NCBI RefSeq assembly: GCF_026571515.1 | Contig: NW_026853744.1 | Coordinates: 1-64,000, forward strand | Direction: 5' to 3' | DNA length: 64,000 nt | From: Ruditapes philippinarum | Taxonomy: Eukaryota | Shown here: positions 5,933 through 32,896 of the stretch, piece by piece | How positions within the stretch are numbered: position 1 is the first letter of the stretch | How the letters are laid out: each line of letters opens with the position of its first letter | The notes under the pieces: model-generated | Seen by the model: only the letters and a program-made list of their open reading frames with translations | Told to the model about the DNA's origin: nothing | Databases searched by the model: none | Made by a program: the position numbers and the translations under genes

Positions 5933-8900
5933 CTGAAATGTAACAAAATTAATATTTGACTATTTTATTACAATGCTAAAACTGCTGTTAGGTTTGGAAA
6001 GTCTGAGAAAACTAAACATAAATATCAGTCATCCTAGTAAATGAGCAATCGCTCAAATGTAGAATTTTACTTTACACAATCGCTAAAATGGAGACATTTC
6101 TTAACACAACCGATGAAAAGAAGTCATTTACTAAACACAATCGCTCAAATGAAGACTTTTGCATGTACATTACACAATCGCTCAAATGAAGTCATATACT
6201 TTACACAATCGCTGAAATGAAGACTTATAATTGTACTTTACACAACCGCTGAACTGAAGACATAAACTTTAGCAATCGCTGAAATGAAGACACATACTTA
6301 AGCAATCGCTGAAATGAAGACATAATCTTTAGCAATCGATGAAATGAAGACTAATACTTTAGCAAACGCTGAAATGAACACATACACTTAAGCAATCGCT
6401 GAAATGAAGACTAATACTTTAGCAATCGCAGAAATGAAGACATAAACTTTACACAATCGCTGAAATGAAGACATATACTTTCGCAATCGCTGAAATGGAG
6501 ACATATACTTTACCAATCACTGAAATGAAGACATACACTTAAGCAATCGCTGAAATGAAGACTAATACTTTAGCAATCGCAGAAATGAAGACATAAACTT
6601 TACACAATCGCTGAAATGAAGACATATACTTTCGCAATCGCTGAAATGGAGACATATACTTTACCAATCGCTGAAATGAAGACATATACTTAAGCAATCG
6701 CTGAAATGAAGACATAATCTTTAGCAATCGCTGAAATGAAGACATATACTTTAGCAATCGCTGATATGAAGACACATACTTTCGCAATCGCTGAAAGGAA
6801 GACATAAACTTAAGCAATCGCTGAAATGAAGACATATACTTTCGCAATCGCTGAAATGGAGACATATACTGTAGCAATCGCTGAAATGAAGACATATACT
6901 TAAGCAATTGCTGAAATGAAGACATAATCTTTAGCAATCGCTGAAATGAAGACACATACTTTCGCAATCGCTGAAATGAAGACATACACCTAAGCAATCG
7001 CTGAAATGAAGACATATACTTTCGCAATCGCTGAAATGGAGACATATACTGTAGCAATCGCTGAAATGAAGACATATACTTAAGCAATCGCCGAAATGAA
7101 GACATAATCTTTAGCAATCGCTGAAGTGATATCATATAATTTCGCAATAGCTGAAAGGAAGACATATACTTTACAGAATCGCTGAAATGAAAACATATAC
7201 TTTAGCAATTGCTGAAATGAAGACATATACTTTACACAATCGCTCAAATGAAGACACATGCTTTACGAAATTGCTGGAATAAAGCAAATTTATTACACAA
7301 TCTATGAAATGAACACATAAACTTTACACAGTTGCTTAAATAATGATATATATACTTTATACAATCGCTAAAATAAAAGACAAATATTTTACGAAATAGC
7401 TGGAAGGAAGCAAAATCCTTACACGATCGCTGAAGTAAAGACATATATTCTTTACACGATCGCTGAAATGTAGACACATACTATACACGATCGGTGAAAT
7501 AAAAACATATACTTTACAATATCGATAAAATAAAAACATATACTTCACACGATCGGTGAAATAAAAACATATACTTTACAATATCGGTGAAATAAAAACA
7601 TATACTTTACACAATCGCTAAAATATTGAGATAAACATAATACATATACAAAACGGTTGCATATTTTTATGTAACCAGTATAATATAGAGAAAAATTTTA
7701 ATACCCTATGTCTAAATTTAAACAATCGTTGAGAATGTGAGATTTGATGCATTATTTTGCTATTGAAAATATAAACTTTAATTTGTACACCTTTTTTGTT
7801 AATAGAATTTACTCTTATAACCAAATTCTTTTTAAATATTAAAAATAAAACTTTCATAATTTTAAAAACAAAAATCTGCTACTATTCTTGGAATGCACTG
7901 GTTAATAAAAAATACGCACCCTCATTTAAAACTAAAATTTTAGGTTTTTTTTTTTTTCAAATGTCTCCAAATACATTAGTTTTAAGACAGACATAATTTT
8001 AACAGATATTAGTTCCACAAACATTATCGTATTTCAATGCTTAGAGTCTTGTCCCCATTCCCATCTCTTTCCGCCTCTTCTTTCCAAATTCAATAGAGAA
8101 ATGTTCAATATGCTGGCAGCCCAGTTAAATAAGGTAAACTTACTTGTTTCAGCGATCCCTGTGATACAATAACTTGATAATCAGCCATTAGAACAACAAC
8201 AGACATTGGTCCAAAGGCAAACAGGTTTCCAATGACAAGAGCGTGAGTTGGGTACTGATATTTATCTTTATCTAGATCAGGAACCGAGTAAGAACTTACT
8301 GCGGTGATCAGTATACCCTGAAAAACGAATATTCAAAGATTTTATTCAGAAAATAATTGGTCATATTTTCGTTTTTTTTTTTCTTCATCGTACTTTCAAC
8401 TTTCATTACCGTGGCTTTGACTTTTCACCATCGCACTTTCGACTTATTATAATCGTACCTTCGACTTTCCAGTAGCGAGTTCCGCATTTAAGCCATCGTA
8501 GTTTCGACTTTTTACCATACTATACCTTGTGGATTTACGCCTTTCTGTTAAACTGCGCTTTGAAAAGATGCCATTAGATTCTGAAGAAGGTGCGTATTTA
8601 AAGGGTTTTCCATCAATTAATCTATATATTTACGGTACGTTAAGGTTATACTTGATAGTTTAACATTTTAAACTATTGTTAAGATATAATTGGATGTACG
8701 GTACTATTTTACATACGGGTAGATGATAATGTCGTAGGATAAGAATTTATGTAAAATGTACACTGCCAAAATTTTGTTTGATGATTTTATAGTCCACTAC
8801 GGATTTCCTGGTAGGATTCATAGTGACCAGGGACAGAATTTTGAGTCGCATCTAATCAAAGAGCTCTGCAGTCTGGCTGGCATTGAGAAAACAAGAACAA

Positions 8901-20900: not shown

Positions 20901-23900
20901 TCACTGATAAGAGACCTGTTCTAAAAATAGCCACATATCGATAACTTTCGGACAAGGAAACTGGTTAATCTACATGTAGATTATACAACATGTAATGGTT
21001 ACGAATACTTTTATTCACATTTCTCTCAATGGAAATGATGTTCCTGGGGTTAAACTTGTGTAAAGCATGATTGAGATGGTTTAAAACCATCAGGAAAAAA
21101 AAGATGATATGGTGAAAAAGAAATAACTTTCGGGGCAATACTTTCCATGCATGTCAATTTGAGAAAAATGCCGGCGCTTGGCAATTTGTTTTTGTTTCAC
21201 TGTTTATCAAAATTAGAAATGGTGATATGATATGGTATGATTTTAAGAAATTGGGACTAAAAATGAAAAAGTATCTTTCTGTCCCAGATATACCGTACAA
21301 TTTTTTGTTTCTATGTAAAATACGCAGATTGGAGAAGTCATGAATCTATCCACCAAAGTGCTACCAGTATTAGATTAATGACTATAATATCTTAAATTAA
21401 TTCTTTAATAATTTTAGAATACGCAAAACTCTGCGTTTTTCCTATTTTACCTAATAAAAAATGCCGATTCTAGTAGTTACTTTATCAGAAATAATGTATA
21501 CGTACATGCATGCTTGCATGTATATTTAAACTGAATTGACAATTGAGGTCCGTGATTTAACATACACTGTTTACGTATAGACAATAAAATACATTTGTTT
21601 TTTTATTTTATGTCTCACACAAAATATTTGTTGTTAAAATCATCGCCAATTTAGAATTACTGGTGCATTTTGTAAACTTCGCCTCATCAATCAAAAGAGT
21701 CAAACTTTTTTTCCGCCTGAATGACAAAATCCGTTTTATTGACAAATATAGAGGCCAGAGCAGATTGTGACATATGTTTAAATTTAACTTTTCAAAAGTA
21801 CAGTGTGTAGTTGTCCCTTTTCTTTTCACACTAAATTCCATTTCCAACTTTTTTGCATTCTACAATTTCTTAAAATATTGCATGTAAACAAAGTAAATAT
21901 ACGCTGATTAACATCATGTATAGTGTGAACTCCCTAATCCCTTGTCCGAAAGTCAGTACAGGTGATGTAGTGGTGATAAGGTAAAATCTATTTTTAGAAC
22001 ATTGTTACCTTCAGATCGAAGGCTATTAAGTGTAATGAGATACGAAGTGTGAGACGAAAAAAAGTGTTTGAACACCACTCTAAGTATAAACCGGACAAGG
22101 TGCTTGAATGATTAAATGCTAAAATCTCGCCTTTTCATCCACCAAAATGCACTTAAGAACGGCTTATTTATCTCCTAAGACTGACTAATGATATATGATT
22201 ATGAATGAAAAATGTAAGAATCGCCGAAAAGAAAAAGAAGTTATTTTTCTACATGTTATCATGATTTATGTCAAGCGATTAGAGTTACTGCTACTAAAGT
22301 AGTGATTAAATCCGAATACAAACTTTATGTAAAATAAAGTAAAACCAGTAAACCTACCAATGCAATTAAATGTGTTCCAGGCATTATTACAGGACGACCA
22401 CCCAAGTGTAGGATAGAACGACTGGATTAAAAAGTACAGAACCCAAGCAAAGGCTATCCCATAATACCAAAGGTAAGTGAATGATATAATTATCATGTTC
22501 AATCCTATACCTGAAATATAAAATAAAGGCAAGCGCAAATTTGAAAGCAACGGAAGCAAAATGCAAAGGTTAAATATGAACACACATAAAAAGATCAACA
22601 AGGAAGGGCTGCGTTCATTAAACTCAAACTCTCACAACTCAGCAACCTTACAGACTCTTTATAAAAAATATACAGTACCAAGATAATTTTCCGAAATTAA
22701 GAATTTACAATAAATTTAACACTTATAGATCAACAATTCTCAACAACAACCAAAATCACTTGCTCCCAATCGGTGCTGCTCTGAAAAAGTAAAACTGTAC
22801 ACCATGAAGGTGTTCAAACTTCATAATTGCGCAATGTGTTCCTTTCATGAAACCAAAGAAAATGCATTATTGCTGCGATATTTTAAAAGCAATTGTTGTC
22901 AGATATAATGTTTTCTATATTCTGTACCAATGTCTAGTACATGTTCTATTGGAGACTATCCTCACATTAACCAGAGAGTCATTGGCTTTTCTCATAACAT
23001 CATATCAGGTTTTATTATCATGTAGATTCCTATTTTATCTCATTGTATTATTTTTATCGAAAACCTGTTTATGTGAATTAAGACAAAACATCTGTCTGAT
23101 TTTAACCCACAGCGGGAGTCATCTTGAAGTCATCGTTTTAGTTAATAAATTTTACAACATTTTTTAATGTACCTTTAAACAGCGGGCATATATGCCAAAC
23201 ATTGACAGGCGACTGGCCGGAGAACTGACCTAGACATACTTCTATGTAGTAGATTGGTCCACAGCATACGACCACGAATATCATAAACGGAACCAAGGCG
23301 ATACCTGCAAATACATTGAAGTTTTATAACGCTCTTACATTTGTATTTTATCATAAAATCAGTTAGAATAGAAATAAAGGTAATTCAAAATTAAAGCAAA
23401 GAGGGTTAATGAAAGTTATTTCACTAAGATTGAGAAAGGTATGTACCTTCTCACATAAGCGCAGACGTATAAATTTATATAAACCACGGACATTTTAAAG
23501 TCGATAAATGTTGTGTTGTTGTGACATTGATAAACGATTTTGTTTTTTCATACTGTCTATTTGATCATCGCAACAACCAAAAAAGATATAGTGAAACAGA
23601 TATAGAGGTTTGTAAAAGGTCAATTTGGATAGAAATAGACCTCCTTCTCTCCATCGCAGAGCATATTTTATTAAGATAAGATAAAATCGCGAGGAGTAAT
23701 AAATAAGTTGTTTGTATGGCTTTAGTAACAAGCAATTATCAGTTATCAATTGCAGGCAATAATAAAGTACCCTACCGGTTAAAACCCCACAAGAAATATT
23801 TCCGCGACTTTCTGAAAGTCAATGGCCTTTCTATTATGTCATTTTTGAATGGCATGTATGACCTTTGAGTTTTAGATTAACCTTAAGGATTTGTCTATAT

Positions 23901-26900
23901 CATTTTAGGTGTTTAGTTTCCCTGTCTAGTGAGGTAATTGTGTTTATACAATCGATATCAAATGCTCAAGATTTCACATGATTAATGTTTCAATACTGCT
24001 CTGCTCTATCTTATGTAAATTTGTTGAAATAATTTCAAGAACTTAAAAAGAGATCTCAGGATACAATTTTTAGAGACGGACAGACAATCAGACGGAGGGC
24101 AACCTTAAGGCCCTGGTTGTCGCCAGTAAGGGACTAAAATGACAATTTGATAAACATCATCCGAATTGATATCTATCAGTATTTCAAGTTTTGTGGACAA
24201 ATATCTGATGCATGAAAATAGTAACAGACTTAAAGATTGCCATTGAACAAACACAATGAGGTTAAGTTAAATATATCGGTATTTTTGCAACATTTTAAGT
24301 CTATTTATTACCATAACAACCAGATGTCAGAAAATAAAATGATGTGTATAATCTCTATACTTCCAACTGTTCATGTTTTAAGCTTTGTTAAAAATAGTAT
24401 ATTCAAGATATAAACGGGCCTAAATGTATTGCAATTTTCTATATGCTATAAGGAAGAAAGAAAATGACGTCCATAATATATATATATCCGCGCAGTCTGA
24501 TCAGGATCCATGCTGTTCGCTTACAGACCCTATAACAAGTAAAGAAACTGATAGCGAACAGCATGGATACTGATCAGACTGCGCGGATGAGCAGGCTGGG
24601 TTGGATCCATGCTGATCGTAAACCCACTATGTTGGCTTTGTTATGACACAGCTCATATTTTATTCCATATTGAATCATAGTTACATCCATTTTTAGCAAA
24701 CGGTACTCTCCTCATTGAATTATCGCAATACAAAATATAAAGAAACACAGAGTTATTGTGATAAACAACTTTTTCCTTTTTATGTTTGCGAGTCATAACT
24801 TAACAGTTAAACAAAGGGATTTTATATGACTAACTGTAGGAGTAATAGAATGAAGTTTACTATATGATTTTTTTGCAAAGCATTTATACATTAATTAAAA
24901 CAGAAATAGGATTATAGGATTATTTTGTGATAACGAGGTAAAGTAAAACAGAGAAAGGTTTATATGAAAGGAATTATTTATTTTTTTTTCTTTTCGCTGT
25001 CAACTCAAATTCCGCCATTTTGAATGTATGTATCCTATGAGATACATATCTCCACAAAGGACAAAGTCACGCTCAAATCAATTGTAGATGGGAGTTGGAT
25101 ATTGGAAGGAAAAGGGAGGGGAGGGAGACAAAGCAATTAAAGAAAACAATAGAAATGTCAATAGTGTCAAAAATGTATTTTATTGATAGAGACTCGTTAA
25201 TGTAATTATTTATATAAATTGAATACAAATACATTATAAGACAACAAAAATGAATGATGCAATACTAAGAAAGGCACACACATCACTTTTCATAAATATC
25301 AAACAACAGAACGGCATAAACATGACAATGTAATTCATAATTGTGTATAAACTGTTCACATGTAAAGTATATATATTTATTCATTTTAGCTAGTAAAAAT
25401 TTTCTTCATTTTTATAAATGACATTCCGGCATGCGTTCAATATCACGCGTTACCAAAAGATATACGAACACACAATGTTATCTACAAAATCACTTAGCAA
25501 TGAATTTCACATTTCTAATGATTGAAAACACACAGCAGTCAATGCAGCCAAAATTAACGAGGCTATTATTTGCCGAGAAATAGCGGTATCATCACCGATT
25601 TACGCCGTGAATGGTGCTTCCTTCTACGACTCGATTTAATAGGTTGAATTCCCCATTTCATGTTCTTGCAGTCGCATCCTTCTACCGGAGGAAGAAAATC
25701 AAATATGCAGACGGGGCATTTGATACGGAAACATTCCGAATATTGCAACACACATAAACTCATGACAGCGAGGAACAATAGAGTTCTCATCATCTTTGAG
25801 TGTGATTTCAATCTAAAATGATAAAAAAAACATCTGCTATAAAAGACGGTATCTTCTTATTTAAAATCAATGTTTATTATTACAGAAATGTTAATGTGTT
25901 TATTTGCAAGTTTTGTATGCACTTAGAAATCTAAAAAAATGTTTCAAAACAGGTATTTTTTACAATTCTGATATGTAGTTTTGCCGATCCAGTCTCTCAA
26001 TTACAAAATCACATATAAACATAATTTGATCTAAGATGATAAATTATCTGGCACTCCTCTTTTTTTGCCAGTTTTTAAGCTAAAATTAAAATCTCAAGCG
26101 TTTGTTTTCCACAGGTATATTATATTTACATTAAAAACGTTTGTTTCATATTTACGAGTATATAGGTATTTTTTTTCTTCAAACAGTCTAAATACATGTA
26201 AACAAATATAGAATGTGCGTTTTTATAAGATACTAAACGTACTTTTTACATATATGAATGACACATGCAACTTCAAACTGTTTGCAAATAAAGGTATAAA
26301 CACATTCTTTTGAGTATATCAATAAAAATAATCAATGTGAAATTAATTTACATGTTAAATGCTCAAAATATTATCATATTTTTCTTAAAGGGACTCCACT
26401 GAGGTTTTTTGACTGGAAATAATTTTTTGAGAACATTACTCCATTTGATGTAGATCTATACTAATAACTTATGTGCAAAATTTCAGATCATTAGCTTGCT
26501 CCGTTTTTCCAGAATAATTATTATAATAGTGAAAAATGACCCAAAATTGAAAAGTGTTTAAACGCTTTTCACTCAAATCAGACTGAGAATAGCACAAACA
26601 TATGATTTTCAATGCATTTCTTCTATATTTCTTGGTTATATTTTATTAATATTTATGTTTTAAGCGCTCATGTTTATCTATGGAAAAAAATTTTCATGTT
26701 TTTAGGCTTATAAACCTCAGTGGAGTTCCTTTAAAATACTCTGTAAAAATGTAGAAGAAAACTTACCTGAATGCCTTTACTTCTGGACAAAAGCTCCAAA
26801 CCTCAGCTGACAATGACTTTTTCTTCTGATGAAGCGGCTATTTATGTGTTGTAGTCATTCATGAAGGACCAATCAAAATTTACGTCTTTGCCTATCCTTA

Positions 26901-29900
26901 GAAGTAAACTCGTTAATTTATCAAATTACCACCGCTTAGTGGAGGAAAACGCGGAAGGATGAAATTCCTTTCTACCAAACTTTATTCCTTTTTCTTTTTT
27001 TATTGATAATGCCATTACTTATGGTATGGTTGTCTTAATTAATTCTTGTAATTTTGAGATTTAATGTAAATCCTTTTATATTCTCGTACTATTTATTTCG
27101 CGAAAAAATGCCTGAATTATTTCGCGGATGCATAAGTTCGCGAAGGCAGAGACAGAATAAAATTCGCAATTTTCGTCGGATATGTTTTGGGAGCAAAAGG
27201 AAAGTGGAAAAATATGTTAGTAAATCTTGAAAACTTTATTAGTATGTGCACACATTATTTTTAAACGGTATTTGTATTCCTTATCAAACTAGTGCACCAT
27301 TCGGACAATTTTGAATCGGATTTAATTTTGTAAAATGTATGTTATGTTAAAGATAAACTATGCTCATCCTTGCGTAACATATTTTTATCAAAGAAATTTA
27401 CTAAAATATATGTAATTCTTACTGTAAATGTCCAATTTGAATAAAAGAATGAATAAATTATGTATTGTAAGCTGCGTTCCCTATAACAGGTCAAGTAAAA
27501 TTGGTCTTTTCTTTAAAAAATGCCAGTTTTTTTAATGATACTATATAAGTATACTATTAATAATTGTTACCACCTGCAGTGTGTAGAATTTTACACACAA
27601 CATATCTACTTTGTGTGAAGTTAAATCATAGTTATTTTATATTTACAAAGAAACTGTGTAGCAAGCATACATATTTTCAAATATGAAATTTGAGCATAGT
27701 ATATCTTTAAAAAATACGCGGCACCATGATTTCGCGACGCAAACGATCCGTGAATGGTAGCGAAAACTGAAACATTGCACATAATACTGAATTTACAGTT
27801 TATATTCAAAATTTAATGATAATAACTAAATATATCATGGAAAATAGATTTCTTGAAAGGTTTATATTCCTAAAAATACGCACAGAAGTTAATTTCTGAG
27901 TAAAGTGTACTCTCAGAAATATATATAAAAATAGATGAACGCTTTGACTTAGTATTTGATTGGCAAAGAGGAGTATTCCGATTGTTTGTACCACCATGAG
28001 TATAAATTATAGAAACTAGGAGGTATAAAAAAACAACGAATCGGGTCTTGACTGGATATTTCTCTATAGTTGAAGACTAAATGTTAATTCTCAACATGGT
28101 ATCAGTCCATGAATATGTAATGATATGTTTGAAATAATGTATTTTTGTAGATTAACTGATTTTTGTATTAAATTGTAACCGGCCTGAATGTGACTCACTC
28201 CTTTTTGTTTTCATTGTAACTTTGAAATCATTTCATGACAAAGCAGAAAATTGCAGGTTAATACAGGTACAGATTTGCAAAACACTTACAAGTTCGTTAA
28301 ATGGCTGTCGTTCAGCGATCAATAAAAAAATAAAACAAAACAAACATACAATAAATGCACAAATAATTCAGTTAGTAACAAACCAATATAAGTTCATTCT
28401 AACAATTGAACTTACGTTAGATGTAATGTGTACAAAGGAACGGATGATACAGATTTTAAAAGGAAAATTCATGCTTCTATTGTTAATTCAAATTATCAAA
28501 ATGTACGGAAATTCCGTCGGAACTGTATAAAATGTACGGAAATTCCGTCGGAACTGTATAAAACAGGCGTGTTTGTTTATTCCGTAAGAGCCAATAACAT
28601 ATGTACGAAATCATTGAACCTTGCATTAAAATAACACTATATTTATTTTTTGTTCCGTAAATATTTTATCCTGTTTACTTTCAATATGGGTAGTAAATAA
28701 CAGAGACGTTGTATATGAGAATCGACTATAAATTTATGTAAACTACATAATTTTACCGTATATTTATACTCCTTAAATATAGATATGATATAGCCTTATA
28801 CGCGTTAAAGCTACAGGCCTCCAGATAGATGAGCTGCTTTTTAAAAACAAAAATGAGAAACATGTACTACGATTTTAGGAAAGGTAATAAAATTCAAGAT
28901 TCAAGTAATAATTTATATGTTGTGTGCGGTTAATGACTGATTTTTCAGTATTTACATCTATATTTCTACTGCGTTACTAACGCAGTAAGAGCTATTTTAC
29001 GTATTTTGACATATTTTTGGTGGTTTACATACATTACGAGTGTCATTTATAATGTGTAAATTGCTTCCGTTTGGTTACTTCACAATAATATACTTTTAAA
29101 TACATTTGCTGCTTACAACTAAACATTTCTTTAATGAAATACAAAATAAAGTGTTGATTTTTTTTACAAAAGAAAGGCAGTATTTTAAATTGAAAAATCA
29201 CTATTATTCAGACAAGTAAATTGATTTAGTGTTTAAAATTATTTATATAAATGGTCTCGCGCACATTGGTTACTGTTGTAATTTTGTAAATGCTTACTAG
29301 GGGAATTCTATTTTAAAGTCACTGCAAACACTAACCTTAATACAAAATAAAATCTGATGTTAAACCATCCAAAAGGTACCATAGACAGCACTAGACAGTC
29401 AAGGAAATAACATCATTTTCAACCTCAGATTTCAAATTTGTCTCTGTCTATGCATGGGAGGGGATACCTCCCCTAGACGCACCCCAATCACCTACATTTT
29501 TCTTTATTCTATTCTTATCGTCTAAACATGCGTACAAAATAAAATGTTTTCTGATAAGGTGAGCTATAAAAGAATCTATTACAATTTTTGTCACATGAAC
29601 AAGATGCCGGCCCAATCTTCAAACATGCGCACTTTTCCCCTATCGCATTGTTTTTCTTTTGTGTTTTGTATATGGTACCTTTTGGATGGTTTAACATCTT
29701 CCACCCACATTCCAGCTTCGCAGCTAACCTTGTTCTGTATCCGCCACTGTTTAAGCAAATTGATTTTGTGAAGAATTAATTTCTCATTTGATTAGTAAAT
29801 TATGTACATCATATAATAATTAATATTGAAATCAGACTAAAGAAAATTTAAAATTAAATTTCTACAGAAATGTGTTTTTCCCCCATCAGATATAATATTA

Positions 29901-32332
29901 TAACATTCTTTTATATTGTATTTGCAGGTTAAGATACAATACTTATTGTTCGTTCATACAAAATGTCTAAAATAGACCATGTTCATAAAGTGTGTAAGCA
30001 ATGTAAGAATATCCACAATTAAGACCACCCCACAATTTAGACCACTTTGGTCAAGTCCTGATGGTGGTCTTAATTGAGGGGTTTTACTGTATAATGTTTT
30101 AATTATTTATTTGGACTCAACTGATGTTTTTAGACATTACGGGGCTGAAAATACATTCCCGATATTTGTGTTACAGTTGATTTAGGTCTTTTTCTATAAC
30201 TTGTTTGCAAATTTTAGCTCATTCCCTCGTCCTGTATTTTTCTATTGTGAAAAATAGCCCAAAAAGTAAAAGGTTGCAACGCTTTTTTCTCAAATTTGGC
30301 TAATAATGACATGTCTTTGCAGATTTTAAATATTTAGCGTTCACTTGATTTTTGTAAAAACAATTAATTTAATGGTTTTTTTTATTGCTTTAGATCTCCA
30401 TCAAGTCATATTTACTTATAAATTATGATAACATTAAACAATTAAAAATGAAAATGTTGATTTGATACAAAAGTTTTTAACATATAATATCTCGATTATT
30501 CTTTTTCATGCGCCATTAATTTTTACAACTGTCATATAGATCTACATGTATTATCATTAATATAGACACACGCGTTAGGTTCATGTGCGTGCACATGAAT
30601 TCAGTTAACTTTATCATGTACAATGTTTCTCACTCCACTGATCTTGTATTTAATCAATTCGATCATTTTAAAAGTTTTGAGACATTACCACTTAATGTCG
30701 TGTGATATAGTTATAATTACGATTGTTACATTCGCACGCTTCACCGCTTCTATCATTTAGAAATCGTTCCAAATTCAAATAATTTATTTTGTGGTAGCAA
30801 TGTTTTTACACTGTAAATGTTACAAAACTGAAATAAGCAAGTATAAAAGAAATATCGTGGAAGAAAATCTCTCGGGACTTGAAAATATTAGTACATATCT
30901 TTTAAATATTTTGAATATTTTTGCTAAAATTATTATTTCTGCTTTTAATAATGGCTGATTGTCCAAAATTTCGAGACTGATAATGAGAAGGATTGTTTCA
31001 CTTTTGCTTTTTTTGTTTCCTAAAATCGCCTATTTTCTTGTTGTTTTTTTTTTCTTCTTCTTATTTTTTTTTTTTAGCAATCATAAAGTTTGCCAAGCTT
31101 ACACATAAATTACCTACCCTTGAAACTATCTGAAATCAATTTAAATGGCAGAAGACTTGAAAACGAGGTAGGAGGCCCATCTCAAAATTTTTCTGTTATC
31201 GTATTCTAAGATCATCCAAGGTGTTAGAATAATCTGCTATAAGATTTCCATTTTGCTATATGCTACAACGAACTTAAATCACATACCTTTCTGAAAAAAT
31301 TAATACAGATTTTAACGTGGATCTCTTAAAGATATGTTGAGCCTCAGACATGTGCACGAGTTATCTCTGAAGAAAAGACAAATTTAAAGAAATCGGTGTT
31401 CAGTGAGTGAGAAAAAAGAAGTGTTATAAATTTTCGTAAACAACCAATGGACAAATGGCAAAACATAATAATTCAAAAGATGGTTTAGTTATATGGTTAA
31501 TGTGTATCATTTCGGGATCCTTAATAAGATGTGCAATGAGGTACATTTTATTTGGACATTTAGCGGTAAAATCATGTATGAATGCAATATTATTAGTCCT
31601 GAAGGAATTCACAATATTTCTTGCTGCATGGCTAACGTCATACGGCATTATCCTGTTGTTGGCATTGTTTTGGTGTGTCATCCAAGATTCTCATTTCGGT
31701 AGCGTTGGACATTCAAATTAACGCCGATCACCACGAGAGGTGTTAGATAATTATGCGCAATACCTGCCCAGACCAAGACAGAACCTCCGCCCAATAAACG
31801 ATCTCGTTCAGTAGTCAACAGTCGGCATAGCGTTCATAACTTCTTTTTGTTTTTTCCGCCCAAAGCAGATCATGAAAAGTCGCTTCGTATAGGTACGAAA
31901 TGTAAAACTGGAAATGACTTCCTAACGGAAGTTACGTCGGCATAAACATAAACGAGATCAATAATAACATTATCAATTTCTTTTTCAGGCAGGTGCATGG
32001 TTATCATAATACATTCCACACAAAATTGATTTCTTTATGACATTTTATATATATATATGTCAAAAACATTTACTACGTATTAATTAAAACGACACCAGTC
32101 GCTTTTTGTGTCACGGTTCAGAACTGTTCACTATTTTGTGTGAGCGACCGGATGGCTCAGCCGGTACAGTCGCGGAGCGGTGTTCATATAAGAAAACAGA
32201 ATATCACACGACCGCTCTAATGAGTGGACGGTATTGTAATAAGTCTTAACACAATTTTCTATGTAAATAATGGTTTATTAAGAAATAAAAAAATTCTGAT
32301 CAATTTGAATTAGCACTTTGATTTTTTTCTTC

Positions 32333-32368
<36 letters not shown>

Positions 32369-32896
32369 GGCCATTCCGAACCTAATCGGAATGAATCTTA
32401 AAATGTAAACTATTGTTTATCGTCAAATGCCCGCCACACCTAACACACACACGAATACACACAAAAACCATAAAATCAAGACAGTTTAGGTTCACCTCAC
32501 ACATTTTGCAACTCTGCTTATCGGGTGGTCGATCTTTCTACCAACATAAACTTTAGTTAAATTCTGTATATTCATAATCAAAAATAACAAAATGTTTACA
32601 AAATTGATGCATATTGAGGCGAAAATTATCAAAAACTTACCGCCACCGTTCCTGAAGCAAAAATAAGGAAAACGCCAAATATTCCCTAAACCGACTGTAT
32701 ATCCTACAATGGAGAGTACAAACTCAAACTGGCCGCTCCAAGTTTCCCTTTTCGTTCGACCATTTGTATTATCGTCCATTGAATGTCCTGTATTATCACT
32801 ATCAATTTCGACAAAAGCATGGCTAAAGCTTTCGCTTTCTTTTTCGTCATCTTCAAATGTTCTCATGACATTTAAATTTGATACCTCCTCAGCCAT
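5783..32896 (-). CDS. SLC6/NSS family Na+-dependent transporter (amino-acid type, glycine/proline-transporter-like); 14 coding exons, 632 aa
   Basis: Exons 32641-32896, 23173-23304, 22358-22510, 20358-20448, 19563-19695, 19126-19260, 18758-18861, 17951-18075, 17599-17711, 16854-16985, 11895-11994, 11307-11407, 8144-8317, 5783-5932. All GT-AG, phases compatible, total 1899 nt. Motifs [69 protein letters not shown]; exon sizes 135/104/125/113/100/101 are typical of SLC6 genes. Confidence 0.95.
6045..7620. repeat. 30/31-bp minisatellite (~50 units) in SLC6 intron 13
   Basis: Unit ~CAATCGCTGAAATGAAGACATATACTTTAG; homogeneous 30-bp core ~6270-7170, more diverged 31-bp units at both edges. Confidence 0.95.
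8144..8317 (-). CDS. SLC6 exon 13 (TM12)
   Basis: tttcag|[58 protein letters not shown]|gtaagt; 174 nt. Confidence 0.9.
8756..9748 (+). CDS. N-truncated Gypsy integrase ORF (330 aa)
   Basis: [51 protein letters not shown]...KW...PY (GPY/F module); lacks HHCC and the first catalytic Asp. Confidence 0.85.
   Translation: MYTAKILFDDFIVHYGFPGRIHSDQGQNFESHLIKELCSLAGIEKTRTTPYHAMGNGMVERFNQTLLKMLGTLEEHQKSDWKAHVPSLVHAYNATRHESVGFSPYFLMFGRHPRLAIDAFLGLPTDGLSSSIHSEYVIKLNDRLRSAYAKARETAVKTSATNKAYYDQKARSSVLQPGDRVLVRNVSIRGKQKLADKWEHSPYIVVSQPLEDIPVYEVKKEGSRFKKTRTLHRNLLLPFMSISDVPVEDKQMELDIVNDSGDLQTDVDVTDAEHVSVENGMNLNNDCSFSHSDISISGEHDDDEIQPEQSSRPVRTRRQPNWMSTGDWKL
10365..11038 (+). repeat. 3' LTR (674 bp) with an internal 92-bp direct repeat
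   Basis: TG...CA ends; 10590-10681 equals 10863-10954, each containing AATAAA. Confidence 0.88.
11307..11407 (-). CDS. SLC6 exon 12 (TM11)
   Basis: ttgtag|[33 protein letters not shown]|gtaatg; 101 nt. Confidence 0.92.
11895..11994 (-). CDS. SLC6 exon 11 (TM10)
   Basis: ttacag|[34 protein letters not shown]|gtaatt; 100 nt. Confidence 0.93.
13595..14341. repeat. Cluster of a ~270-bp interspersed repeat: diverged inverted copy 13595-13857, copy 13938-14210, partial tandem copy 14221-14341
   Basis: Shared gcattaatcacaacaaaattac...gtgcaacatccctca; another copy at 46087-46305. Confidence 0.75.
14370..14900 (+). pseudogene. Penelope-like retroelement RT relic
   Basis: Frameshifted translation [12 protein letters not shown]...CPSELK.NK.NSS..FLDLNI...LIRFARIC fits the PLE RT YxDD-to-thumb pattern; boundaries approximate. 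Confidence 0.6.
16854..16985 (-). CDS. SLC6 exon 10 (TM8-TM9)
   Basis: tttcag|[44 protein letters not shown]|gtaagt; 132 nt. Confidence 0.92.
17118..17396 (-). mobile_element. tRNA-derived SINE (Meta-type core), young copy
   Basis: A box TGGCCGAGTGG, B box GGTTCGAATCC, core CAGGTGCCC...GGGCACCTGAGGTCTTCCTCCACCA, A-rich tail; ~10-bp TSD attcttaaat/atttttaaat. Confidence 0.85.
17599..17711 (-). CDS. SLC6 exon 9 (EL4, TM8)
   Basis: ttccag|[38 protein letters not shown]|gtttg; 113 nt. Confidence 0.93.
17951..18075 (-). CDS. SLC6 exon 8 (TM7)
   Basis: tttaag|[41 protein letters not shown]|gtagg; 125 nt. Confidence 0.93.
18278..18526 (-). mobile_element. Older, diverged copy of the same SINE family
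   Basis: Colinear similarity to 17118-17396 (ccgtgcattatttc, gtaagctagctggat, cttaaccac). Confidence 0.75.
18758..18861 (-). CDS. SLC6 exon 7 (TM6)
   Basis: ttatag|[35 protein letters not shown]|gtaagt; 104 nt. Confidence 0.93.
19126..19260 (-). CDS. SLC6 exon 6 (TM5)
   Basis: aaag|[45 protein letters not shown]|gtatt; 135 nt. Confidence 0.93.
19563..19695 (-). CDS. SLC6 exon 5 (TM4)
   Basis: ttccag|[44 protein letters not shown]|gttgg; 133 nt. Confidence 0.93.
19839..20145. mobile_element. TTAA-flanked MITE (Kolobok-like), family copy 2, opposite orientation to 111-416
   Basis: TTAA|GGAACTCAACTGAG ... CTCAGTAGTGTCCCT|TTAA. Confidence 0.6.
20358..20448 (-). CDS. SLC6 exon 4 (EL2, glycosylated loop)
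   Basis: tttcag|[31 protein letters not shown]|gtgagt; three NxS/T sequons; 91 nt. Confidence 0.9.
20535..20665 (-). mobile_element. tRNA-like SINE head fragment
   Basis: Minus strand has gctcaataattagagc and B box GGTTCGATTCTC; stems too degraded for a tRNA gene. Confidence 0.45.
22358..22510 (-). CDS. SLC6 exon 3 (TM3, EL2 disulfide)
   Basis: tttcag|..[50 protein letters not shown]|gtagg; 153 nt. Confidence 0.93.
23173..23304 (-). CDS. SLC6 exon 2 (TM2)
   Basis: ttgcag|[45 protein letters not shown]|gtac; 132 nt. Confidence 0.93.
24487..24655. repeat. Hairpin-forming MITE-like repeat fragment
   Basis: 35-bp inverted repeat 24487-24521 / 24553-24587 with 1 mismatch, plus a partial third copy at ~24590-24615. 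Confidence 0.7.
25179..25184 (-). terminator. Candidate polyA signal of the nested peptide gene
   Basis: AATAAA on minus strand ~380 nt after the stop, followed by T/GT-rich sequence. Confidence 0.5.
25566..25793 (-). CDS. Nested gene: 75-aa secreted peptide precursor
   Basis: [75 protein letters not shown], then TAA TAG; acceptor ttttttttatcattttag| 19 nt before the ATG; GC-richer than flanks. Confidence 0.8.
   Translation of the reverse strand: MMRTLLFLAVMSLCVLQYSECFRIKCPVCIFDFLPPVEGCDCKNMKWGIQPIKSSRRRKHHSRRKSVMIPLFLGK
26389..26730. mobile_element. TTAA-flanked MITE (Kolobok-like), family copy 3, inside the nested gene's intron
   Basis: TTAA|AGGGACTCCACTGAGGTT ... AACCTCAGTGGAGTTCCT|TTAA; 18-bp TIR, 1 mismatch. 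Confidence 0.8.
26767..26814 (-). other. Predicted non-coding exon 1 of the nested peptide gene
   Basis: Consensus donor CAG|GTAAGT at 26767/26766; begins at Inr-like TCATT. Confidence 0.6.
26812..26873 (-). promoter_or_regulatory. Pol II core promoter of the nested gene
   Basis: CATAAATA (26846-26839) at about -32 to -25 from Inr TCA+1TT (26814); CCAAT box at 26869-26873. Confidence 0.55.
29356..29698. repeat. 343-bp segment bounded by a perfect 28-bp inverted repeat (MITE-like)
   Basis: GATGTTAAACCATCCAAAAGGTACCATA at 29356-29383 and its exact reverse complement at 29671-29698. Confidence 0.7.
31470..31865 (-). pseudogene. Tc1/mariner transposase relic
   Basis: Broken translation [44 protein letters not shown] ... 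[27 protein letters not shown] fits the Tc1 DD34E region. Confidence 0.75.
32334..32368. repeat. (ATT)n microsatellite
   Basis: About 11 TTA units. Confidence 0.9.
32641..32896 (-). CDS. SLC6 coding exon 1 (N-terminus, TM1)
   Basis: ATG at 32896; MAEEV...[36 protein letters not shown]; donor G|GTAAGT. Confidence 0.93.

Follow-up and report, generated by a model that had tools for sequence, protein, structure and literature searches.

A candidate gene for a secreted, prohormone-like precursor nested within an SLC6 transporter intron of Ruditapes philippinarum

Introduction

Does the first coding intron of a transporter gene of Ruditapes philippinarum hold a second, independently transcribed gene for a secreted peptide? 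The question is raised by a stretch of 64,000 nucleotides (nt) from NCBI RefSeq assembly GCF_026571515.1 (contig NW_026853744.1, positions 1 to 64,000 of the forward strand), referred to here as the window. A first-pass annotation, made from the letters alone, had proposed that a complete small transcription unit with an open reading frame (ORF) of 75 codons lies on the minus strand within an intron of an SLC6 transporter gene of the same orientation. Its product was described as a candidate novel prohormone or defence peptide. We followed up this proposal by sequence reading, shuffled-sequence controls, searches of protein, genome and metagenome libraries, and alignment of sequencing runs to the locus. 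On balance, the locus is probably a genuine, independently transcribed and spliced two-exon gene, restricted to its lineage, that encodes a secreted, prohormone-like precursor of 75 residues.

Structure of the nested gene

All signals of the small gene stand at canonical spacing (Table 1). The ATG that opens the ORF (25793) is the first in the model mRNA; it follows a 67-nt leader free of upstream ATGs and has an A at position -3. The ORF, the double stop, the splice donor, the 954-nt intron, the acceptor, the AATAAA signal, the TATA-like box and the initiator (Inr) of the first-pass annotation were each recovered where it had placed them on the minus strand. A CCAAT box had been listed as well; the box is present, but as the inverted form ATTGG rather than as CCAAT on the strand of the gene. 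A further AATAAA occurs near 25380. With that correction of the CCAAT box, the sequence observation behind the proposal is confirmed.

The surrounding gene is recognizable from minus-strand, stop-free segments that match the Pfam SNF profile (PF00209) colinearly, with later profile positions continuing down to about 11 kb. Between two SNF-matching exons lies the first coding intron of the host, 32640-23305, which is 9,336 nt long (about 9.3 kb). The small gene (26873-25160) is wholly contained in this intron and runs on the same minus strand, so the proposed same-strand nesting is borne out by transporter exons on either side. The location given earlier as intron 1 is, more precisely, the first coding intron, a numbering based on the coding exons of the host.

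Transcription and splicing

A search of sequencing runs returned 24 runs under one species label, none recorded as an RNA holder, and four of these (X1, X2, X15, and X24) were aligned to 25050-26950. The contigs of run X2 total 96 million letters, the longest being 11 kb, against a genome of 1.4 Gb; because this total is far below genome size, X2 appears to be a transcriptome rather than whole-genome DNA. It contains one 536-nt contig with a k-mer depth of 44.9 that aligned to 25295-25814 at about 95% identity (26 mismatches, 14 gap letters). The alignment ends two letters inside the small intron, at 25814, on the AG of the predicted acceptor, and the contig has 30 extra letters past this point that do not continue into the intron. 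Depth in X2 was zero on unique sequence of the small intron, compared with about 45 on exon 2. Run X15, with contigs summing approximately to genome size and therefore probably DNA, covers intron pieces at 25818-25881 and 26010-26137. Exon 2 is thus represented in an RNA-like run, with its upstream end at the predicted acceptor, and the small gene appears to be transcribed. This agrees with the earlier description of a self-contained transcription unit.

We consider it very improbable that there is no gene here, the ORF being a chance one and the X2 contig an assembly or capture artefact or DNA from a divergent haplotype. The RNA nature of X2 is a guess and the contig is the single one in support, which leaves some room for this explanation. 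However, a single-copy locus at a depth of 45 in a contig set of 96 million letters cannot be whole-genome DNA, and the predicted acceptor AG is precisely where the contig breaks. Neither contig end carries a common restriction site, which counts against a reduced-representation DNA library, and an excess of silent changes in the X2 allele (see below) is not in keeping with a chance ORF.

A different account of the same contig, which we regard as quite improbable, assigns exon 2 to the SLC6 gene as an alternative terminal exon. With splicing from host exon 1 to the acceptor at 25813 and polyadenylation within the intron, the product would be a truncated transcript in which the 75-codon ORF stays untranslated. 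A strong acceptor on the same strand within the host pre-mRNA is compatible with such splicing, and the 30 upstream letters of the contig could derive from either exon. However, the phase-1 host exon 1 joined to 25812 reads GAT TGA, an immediate stop. The end of the contig alignment on AG fits a preceding exon that ends in CAG, as predicted exon 1 does, while host exon 1 ends in GCG and would have stopped the alignment at 25813. In addition, the TATA-like box, Inr, and donor are rightly placed to serve as the promoter and first exon of the small gene itself, and the allele pattern suggests coding constraint on the ORF.

Table 1 Features of the nested small gene, its predicted product, the host gene, and an intronic repeat element. 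Positions are those of the window; a slash marks an exon-intron junction; X2 allele, the allele represented by the contig of run X2.
Feature	Position	Strand	Remarks
Putative inverted CCAAT box ATTGG	26869-26873	-	Direct reading; about 55-60 nt upstream of predicted transcription start
TATA-like CATAAATA	26839-26846	-	About 30 nt upstream of Inr-like A at 26814
Inr-like TCATTG	26811-26816	-	Sequence reading
Predicted non-coding exon 1, 48 nt	26767-26814	-	From Inr-like TCATTG to CAG/GTAAGT; ATG-free
Small intron, 954 nt, GT...AG	25813-26766	-	T-rich tract before AG acceptor
Exon 2	25160-25812	-	19-nt leader, coding sequence, and 3' untranslated region of about 400 nt; 3' end near 25160 predicted
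75-codon ORF	25569-25793	-	Followed by TAA TAG at 25563-25568
AATAAA, predicted poly(A) signal	25179-25184	-	Sequence reading; X2 contig ends short of it, at 25295
Signal-peptide-like residues 1-21	25731-25793	-	Basic R3, 13-residue hydrophobic core, small residues at -3/-1 (S, C)
Four-Cys motif C-P-V-C, ten residues, C-D-C (C26, C29, C40, C42)	25668-25718	-	Residues 26-42; same in X2 allele
RRRK, candidate convertase site	25617-25628	-	Residues 56-59; protein same in X2 allele, one silent change in R57
RRK, candidate convertase site	25599-25607	-	Residues 63-65; no listed nucleotide difference in X2 allele
C-terminal SVMIPLFL then G-K, candidate amidation signal	25569-25598	-	No listed nucleotide difference in X2 allele
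Host SLC6 first coding exon	32641-32896	-	Pfam SNF E=3.8e-19, profile positions 1-57; ATG at 32896 to ...NGGG motif; phase-1 donor G/GTAAGT
Host SLC6 second coding exon	23173-23304	-	Pfam SNF E=1.8e-10, profile positions 37-83
High-copy MITE-like (miniature inverted-repeat transposable element-like) element, 350 nt	26385-26734	.	23-nt terminal inverted repeats, 96% complementary, start TTAAAGGGACTCC

Coding potential and constraint

The X2 contig represents a second allele, and its listed differences from the window comprise 7 in the coding sequence (CDS) and 16 in the untranslated regions (UTRs). Both indels that separate the two alleles (1 and 13 nt) fall in UTR. Four of the coding differences are silent (L8, G48, R57, and codon 52 at its third base); the other three replace residues conservatively, two in the signal region (V10I, L13F) and one beyond it (I52V). 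The X2 allele keeps the ORF, all Cys residues, both basic clusters, and the ten C-terminal residues. The ratio of replacement to silent polymorphism (pN/pS) is 0.19, with a Fisher p=0.034 from the 7 CDS changes, and a comparison of replacement sites with silent and UTR sites combined gives p=0.024. The allele comparison is therefore suggestive, though not proof, of constraint on the ORF at the protein level.

Base composition sets the coding region apart from its surroundings. GC content reaches 42% in the CDS, whereas the 3' UTR has 28%, the small intron 26%, and the host intron 31%; among host-intron windows of 228 nt, the CDS value is in the top 3%. The length of the ORF alone is not significant, because Markov-shuffled versions of the host intron contain on average 1.1 ATG-initiated ORFs of at least 75 codons; the real intron has four. 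We also applied a crude rule that asks for a signal-like start, four or more Cys downstream of residue 20, two or more dibasic sites, and Gly followed by Lys or Arg at the end. Of the 94 ORFs in the window it selects one, the 75-codon ORF, and in 60 Markov shuffles, which contain 3,638 ORFs, it selects none. Taken singly, the C-terminal part of this rule is passed by 0.3% of shuffled ORFs, and a crude rule for the n- and h-regions of a signal peptide, which the 75-mer passes, is satisfied by only 0.7%. The significance of the combined rule is overstated, since it was written after the ORF had been seen.

Searched against the 1.4-Gb assembly, neither exon 2 (25150-25870) nor the promoter with exon 1 (26740-27000) matches any place other than its own. 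The locus is consequently neither a transposon nor a retrocopy, because it is single copy and a retrocopy would also lack the intron. A search of the same genome with the 75-residue protein revealed no paralogue. The contig C122, which appeared in that search at E=8, was rejected as a paralogue since its ORFs have no similar Cys pattern.

These data also bear on a rival interpretation that we consider unlikely, in which the locus is transcribed and spliced while the ORF is young and possibly of de novo origin. Such a locus would amount to a proto-gene or to a non-coding RNA whose ORF is incidental, and the prohormone-like motifs would be chance features of an AT-rich translation that is rich in Lys and Arg. 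The expectation of chance ORFs of such length in the host intron fits this scenario, as do the low-confidence structure prediction and the empty searches for homologues described below, which covered 1.84 billion protein representatives, 5.8 billion protein clusters, JGI metagenome contigs, and the genome itself. However, the GC peak is confined to the CDS, silent changes outnumber replacements between the alleles (p=0.03), the ORF begins at the first ATG in a good context, and the joint occurrence of signal, Cys, dibasic, and G-K features was not reproduced in any of the shuffled ORFs. We continue to favor a gene for a secreted, prohormone-like precursor.

The predicted precursor and its processing

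The hydrophobic N-terminus, the CPVC-x10-CDC motif, the RRRK and RRK clusters, and the G-K end attributed to the product by the first-pass annotation were all found in the 75-residue translation. The second allele encodes the same candidate cleavage sites, RRRK and RRK, and the same G-K-stop end, a candidate amidation signal of Gly followed by a basic residue. The first 21 or so residues would direct the product into the secretory pathway, and the remaining 54 residues would be cut at RRRK and/or RRK by subtilisin-like convertases, after which basic residues would be trimmed. Cleavage would release a peptide of about 34 residues in which the cysteines of CPVC and CDC could form as many as two disulfides. 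A second product may be a short C-terminal peptide, very hydrophobic and open to amidation through its Gly-Lys end. A two-disulfide 34-mer and SVMIPLFL-amide, the products proposed earlier, are thus candidate products suggested by motifs; the former, with its two disulfides, has a computed monoisotopic mass of 3893.895, and for the latter the computed [M+H]+ is 918.548.

This scheme depends on cleavage at RK-type sites and on a putative signal cleavage after C21. The 75-mer carries two further Cys, C14 and C21, which the first-pass annotation had passed over. Because both sit in the presumed signal region, the number of Cys in the mature peptide hinges on the putative signal cleavage site. Net charge is only +2 for the predicted 34-mer and +10 for the whole uncleaved pro-region. 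Between a signalling (neural or endocrine) role and a tissue-specific secreted or defence role, we lean slightly towards a signalling or regulatory peptide, given that the alleles agree in the basic sites and in the G-K-stop end.

Searches for relatives

The first-pass annotation had not recognized the family of this peptide, and our searches likewise placed it in no known family. A Pfam search with the 75-mer at E<=10 returned only a chance match in the signal region (Pox_vIL-18BP, E=0.24), which is below the cutoff of that family. A word search of 5.8 billion protein clusters gave no candidate relative, scores in the ESM Atlas (<=0.79) were at chance level, and a sequence search of PDB with the 34-mer had no match at E<=10. 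Among JGI metagenome contigs, 363 matches to the pattern were found and none was confirmed by tblastn. A full-text literature search for motifs of the peptide had no match. The protein libraries are mostly microbial and metagenomic, and absence from them does not show that related molluscs are without the gene.

An exhaustive HMMER search of 1.84 billion representatives produced one match, P0001, at E=2e-4. This sequence is a 186-residue ORF of three near-identical tandem units of 66 residues, on a single ENA metagenome contig of 4,649 nt. A single unit scores 14-17 bits, which corresponds to E=500-4,400 at the size of the 1.84-billion library. The candidate was rejected as a homologue, being an artefact in which the score sums three dependent matches to the tandem units; a search of the R. 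philippinarum assembly with P0001 found no match. The case shows how tandem repeats inflate whole-sequence E-values in HMMER.

Interpretation and significance

Several points weigh against a spliced gene for a prohormone-like precursor. Transcript support comes from a single contig of a single run, which is only guessed to be RNA, and the 30 upstream letters of that contig are unaligned. The joint of exon 1 and exon 2 is absent among the joints listed for the mapped runs, and no reads fell on the exons in the raw RNA run X24, of which 12% was read, or in X1. The test for selection is based on 7 changes, and 3 of the 26 contig mismatches are unlisted; these probably lie within 30 letters of the piece ends, one of which contains the start codon. 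Neither an orthologue nor a paralogue turned up in the libraries searched, which contain few short proteins of molluscs, and the ORF hence shows no cross-species conservation there. An AlphaFold prediction from the single sequence, with no alignment, had a pLDDT (predicted local distance difference test) of 52.8 and modelled the signal helix alone, with no confident fold. The predicted C-terminal octapeptide is uncharged and very hydrophobic (grand average of hydropathy 2.3), and would be unusual as a hormone. Convertases use RK-type sites less than KR or RR.

A real gene here would mean one more unannotated secreted peptide, of restricted taxonomic range, in a mollusc genome. Orphan secreted peptides are common in such genomes. 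Genes of this type routinely escape annotation pipelines and homology searches, and they are the source of many bioactive peptides of molluscs, including hormones, defence peptides, and toxins. The predicted products are small enough for synthesis and testing. Same-strand nesting also offers a natural case in which to study interference between nested poly(A) and splice signals and a host pre-mRNA. A bolder proposal is that the gene founds a lineage-restricted family, so far undescribed, of signalling or defence peptides that are amidated and disulfide-bridged, and that its promoter, splice, and poly(A) sites compete with host transcription, which would couple peptide output inversely to expression of the transporter. 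We regard this combination as doubtful. On present evidence the locus is a putative peptide precursor gene, one of many candidate orphan peptide genes in the genome.

Host intron and neighboring elements

The immediate stop that results from joining host exon 1 (32641) to the acceptor of the small gene (25812) implies that the nested acceptor and poly(A) signal could trap SLC6 pre-mRNA in premature termination. Elsewhere in the host gene, a microsatellite of (AAT)n type occupies 32281-32416, about 230 nt downstream of the exon 1 donor, and reads as poly-Asn or poly-Ile in open frames. A long minisatellite at 6075-7700, in the 3' part of the gene, contains a stop-free frame of 220 residues on the minus strand made up of repeated units. 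Other GC-rich patches of the host intron (43-45% GC) lie at 31565-31735 and 24415-24640, and the former has open frames of 51-88 residues. The GC-rich patch at 31.4-31.8 kb is reminiscent of a Tc1/mariner transposase remnant, but no Pfam match at E<=0.01 supported this. An Rfam scan of 23-33 kb detected no RNA family.

The small intron contains a MITE-like element 32 nt downstream of the donor of the small gene. Its depth was very high in all four aligned runs and on both strands, raw RNA reads included, and loose ends fall exactly at 26385 and at 26734-26736. Judged from the ratio of depths in X15, the DNA-like run, there may be about 10,000 genomic copies. This element explains most of the runs that matched the locus in the run search.

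Comparison with known peptide systems

Bivalve Cys-rich antimicrobial peptides (defensins, mytilins, myticins, and big defensins) resemble the predicted product in their high diversity of alleles and in having a secreted precursor whose C-terminal extension is cut off at basic sites. These families differ from it in having 6-12 Cys and recognizable domains, compared with four Cys, no Pfam match, and a net charge of +2 in the predicted mature 34-mer. Neither the Cys array of defensins, mytilins, myticins, or macins nor a strongly cationic mature peptide was found in the translation. The earlier suggestion of a cationic antimicrobial product is accordingly weak, as strong basicity is limited to the uncleaved pro-region.

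The four Cys are spaced similarly to those of framework XIV (C-C-C-C) conotoxins such as pl14a, which are likewise secreted mollusc peptides with an amidated end (here predicted). Loop lengths are 3/10/1 in pl14a and 2/10/1 in this peptide, and we treat the similarity as a lead only. Searches gave no match to any Pfam conotoxin family and none to any PDB chain.

A resemblance to the PxFV-amide motif of Mytilus inhibitory peptides had been noted for the C-terminus. The precursors of these peptides are of the repetitive class, which gives rise to numerous short copies with amidated ends (PMC4200219). The predicted end P-L-F-L-(amide) matches them only as P-x-F-hydrophobic-amide: the P-x-F of the PxFV(I)-amide core is present, the last residue is Leu rather than Val, and the amidation is predicted from sequence. 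Instead of many tandem copies there is one candidate copy (residues 66-73), together with a Cys domain that those precursors lack. HMMER and word searches and the accessible parts of the bivalve catalogue supplements revealed no homology to a Mytilus inhibitory peptide precursor, a result obtained with no direct alignment to a named precursor, and the likeness is best regarded as superficial. The fulicins of oyster (xSEFLamide) also share the F-L-amide end with the predicted peptide; they are described as short amidated peptides cut out at GKR sites (PMC8398477). However, fulicins have an acidic S-E-F-L core and several copies per precursor, compared with P-L-F-L, one copy, and no Glu here.

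More broadly, the precursor differs from the catalogued neuropeptide precursors of scallop (PMC5996578), pearl and Pacific oysters (PMC4200219), and oyster visceral ganglia (PMC8398477), with no sequence relative by a motif check in which CPVC and PLFLG were absent from the accessible parts of the supplements of these catalogues. In its overall plan it is like the neuropeptide and prohormone precursors of invertebrates, being small, with a signal-like N-terminus, a Cys-containing peptide directly after the signal, two basic clusters, and a G-K-stop end.

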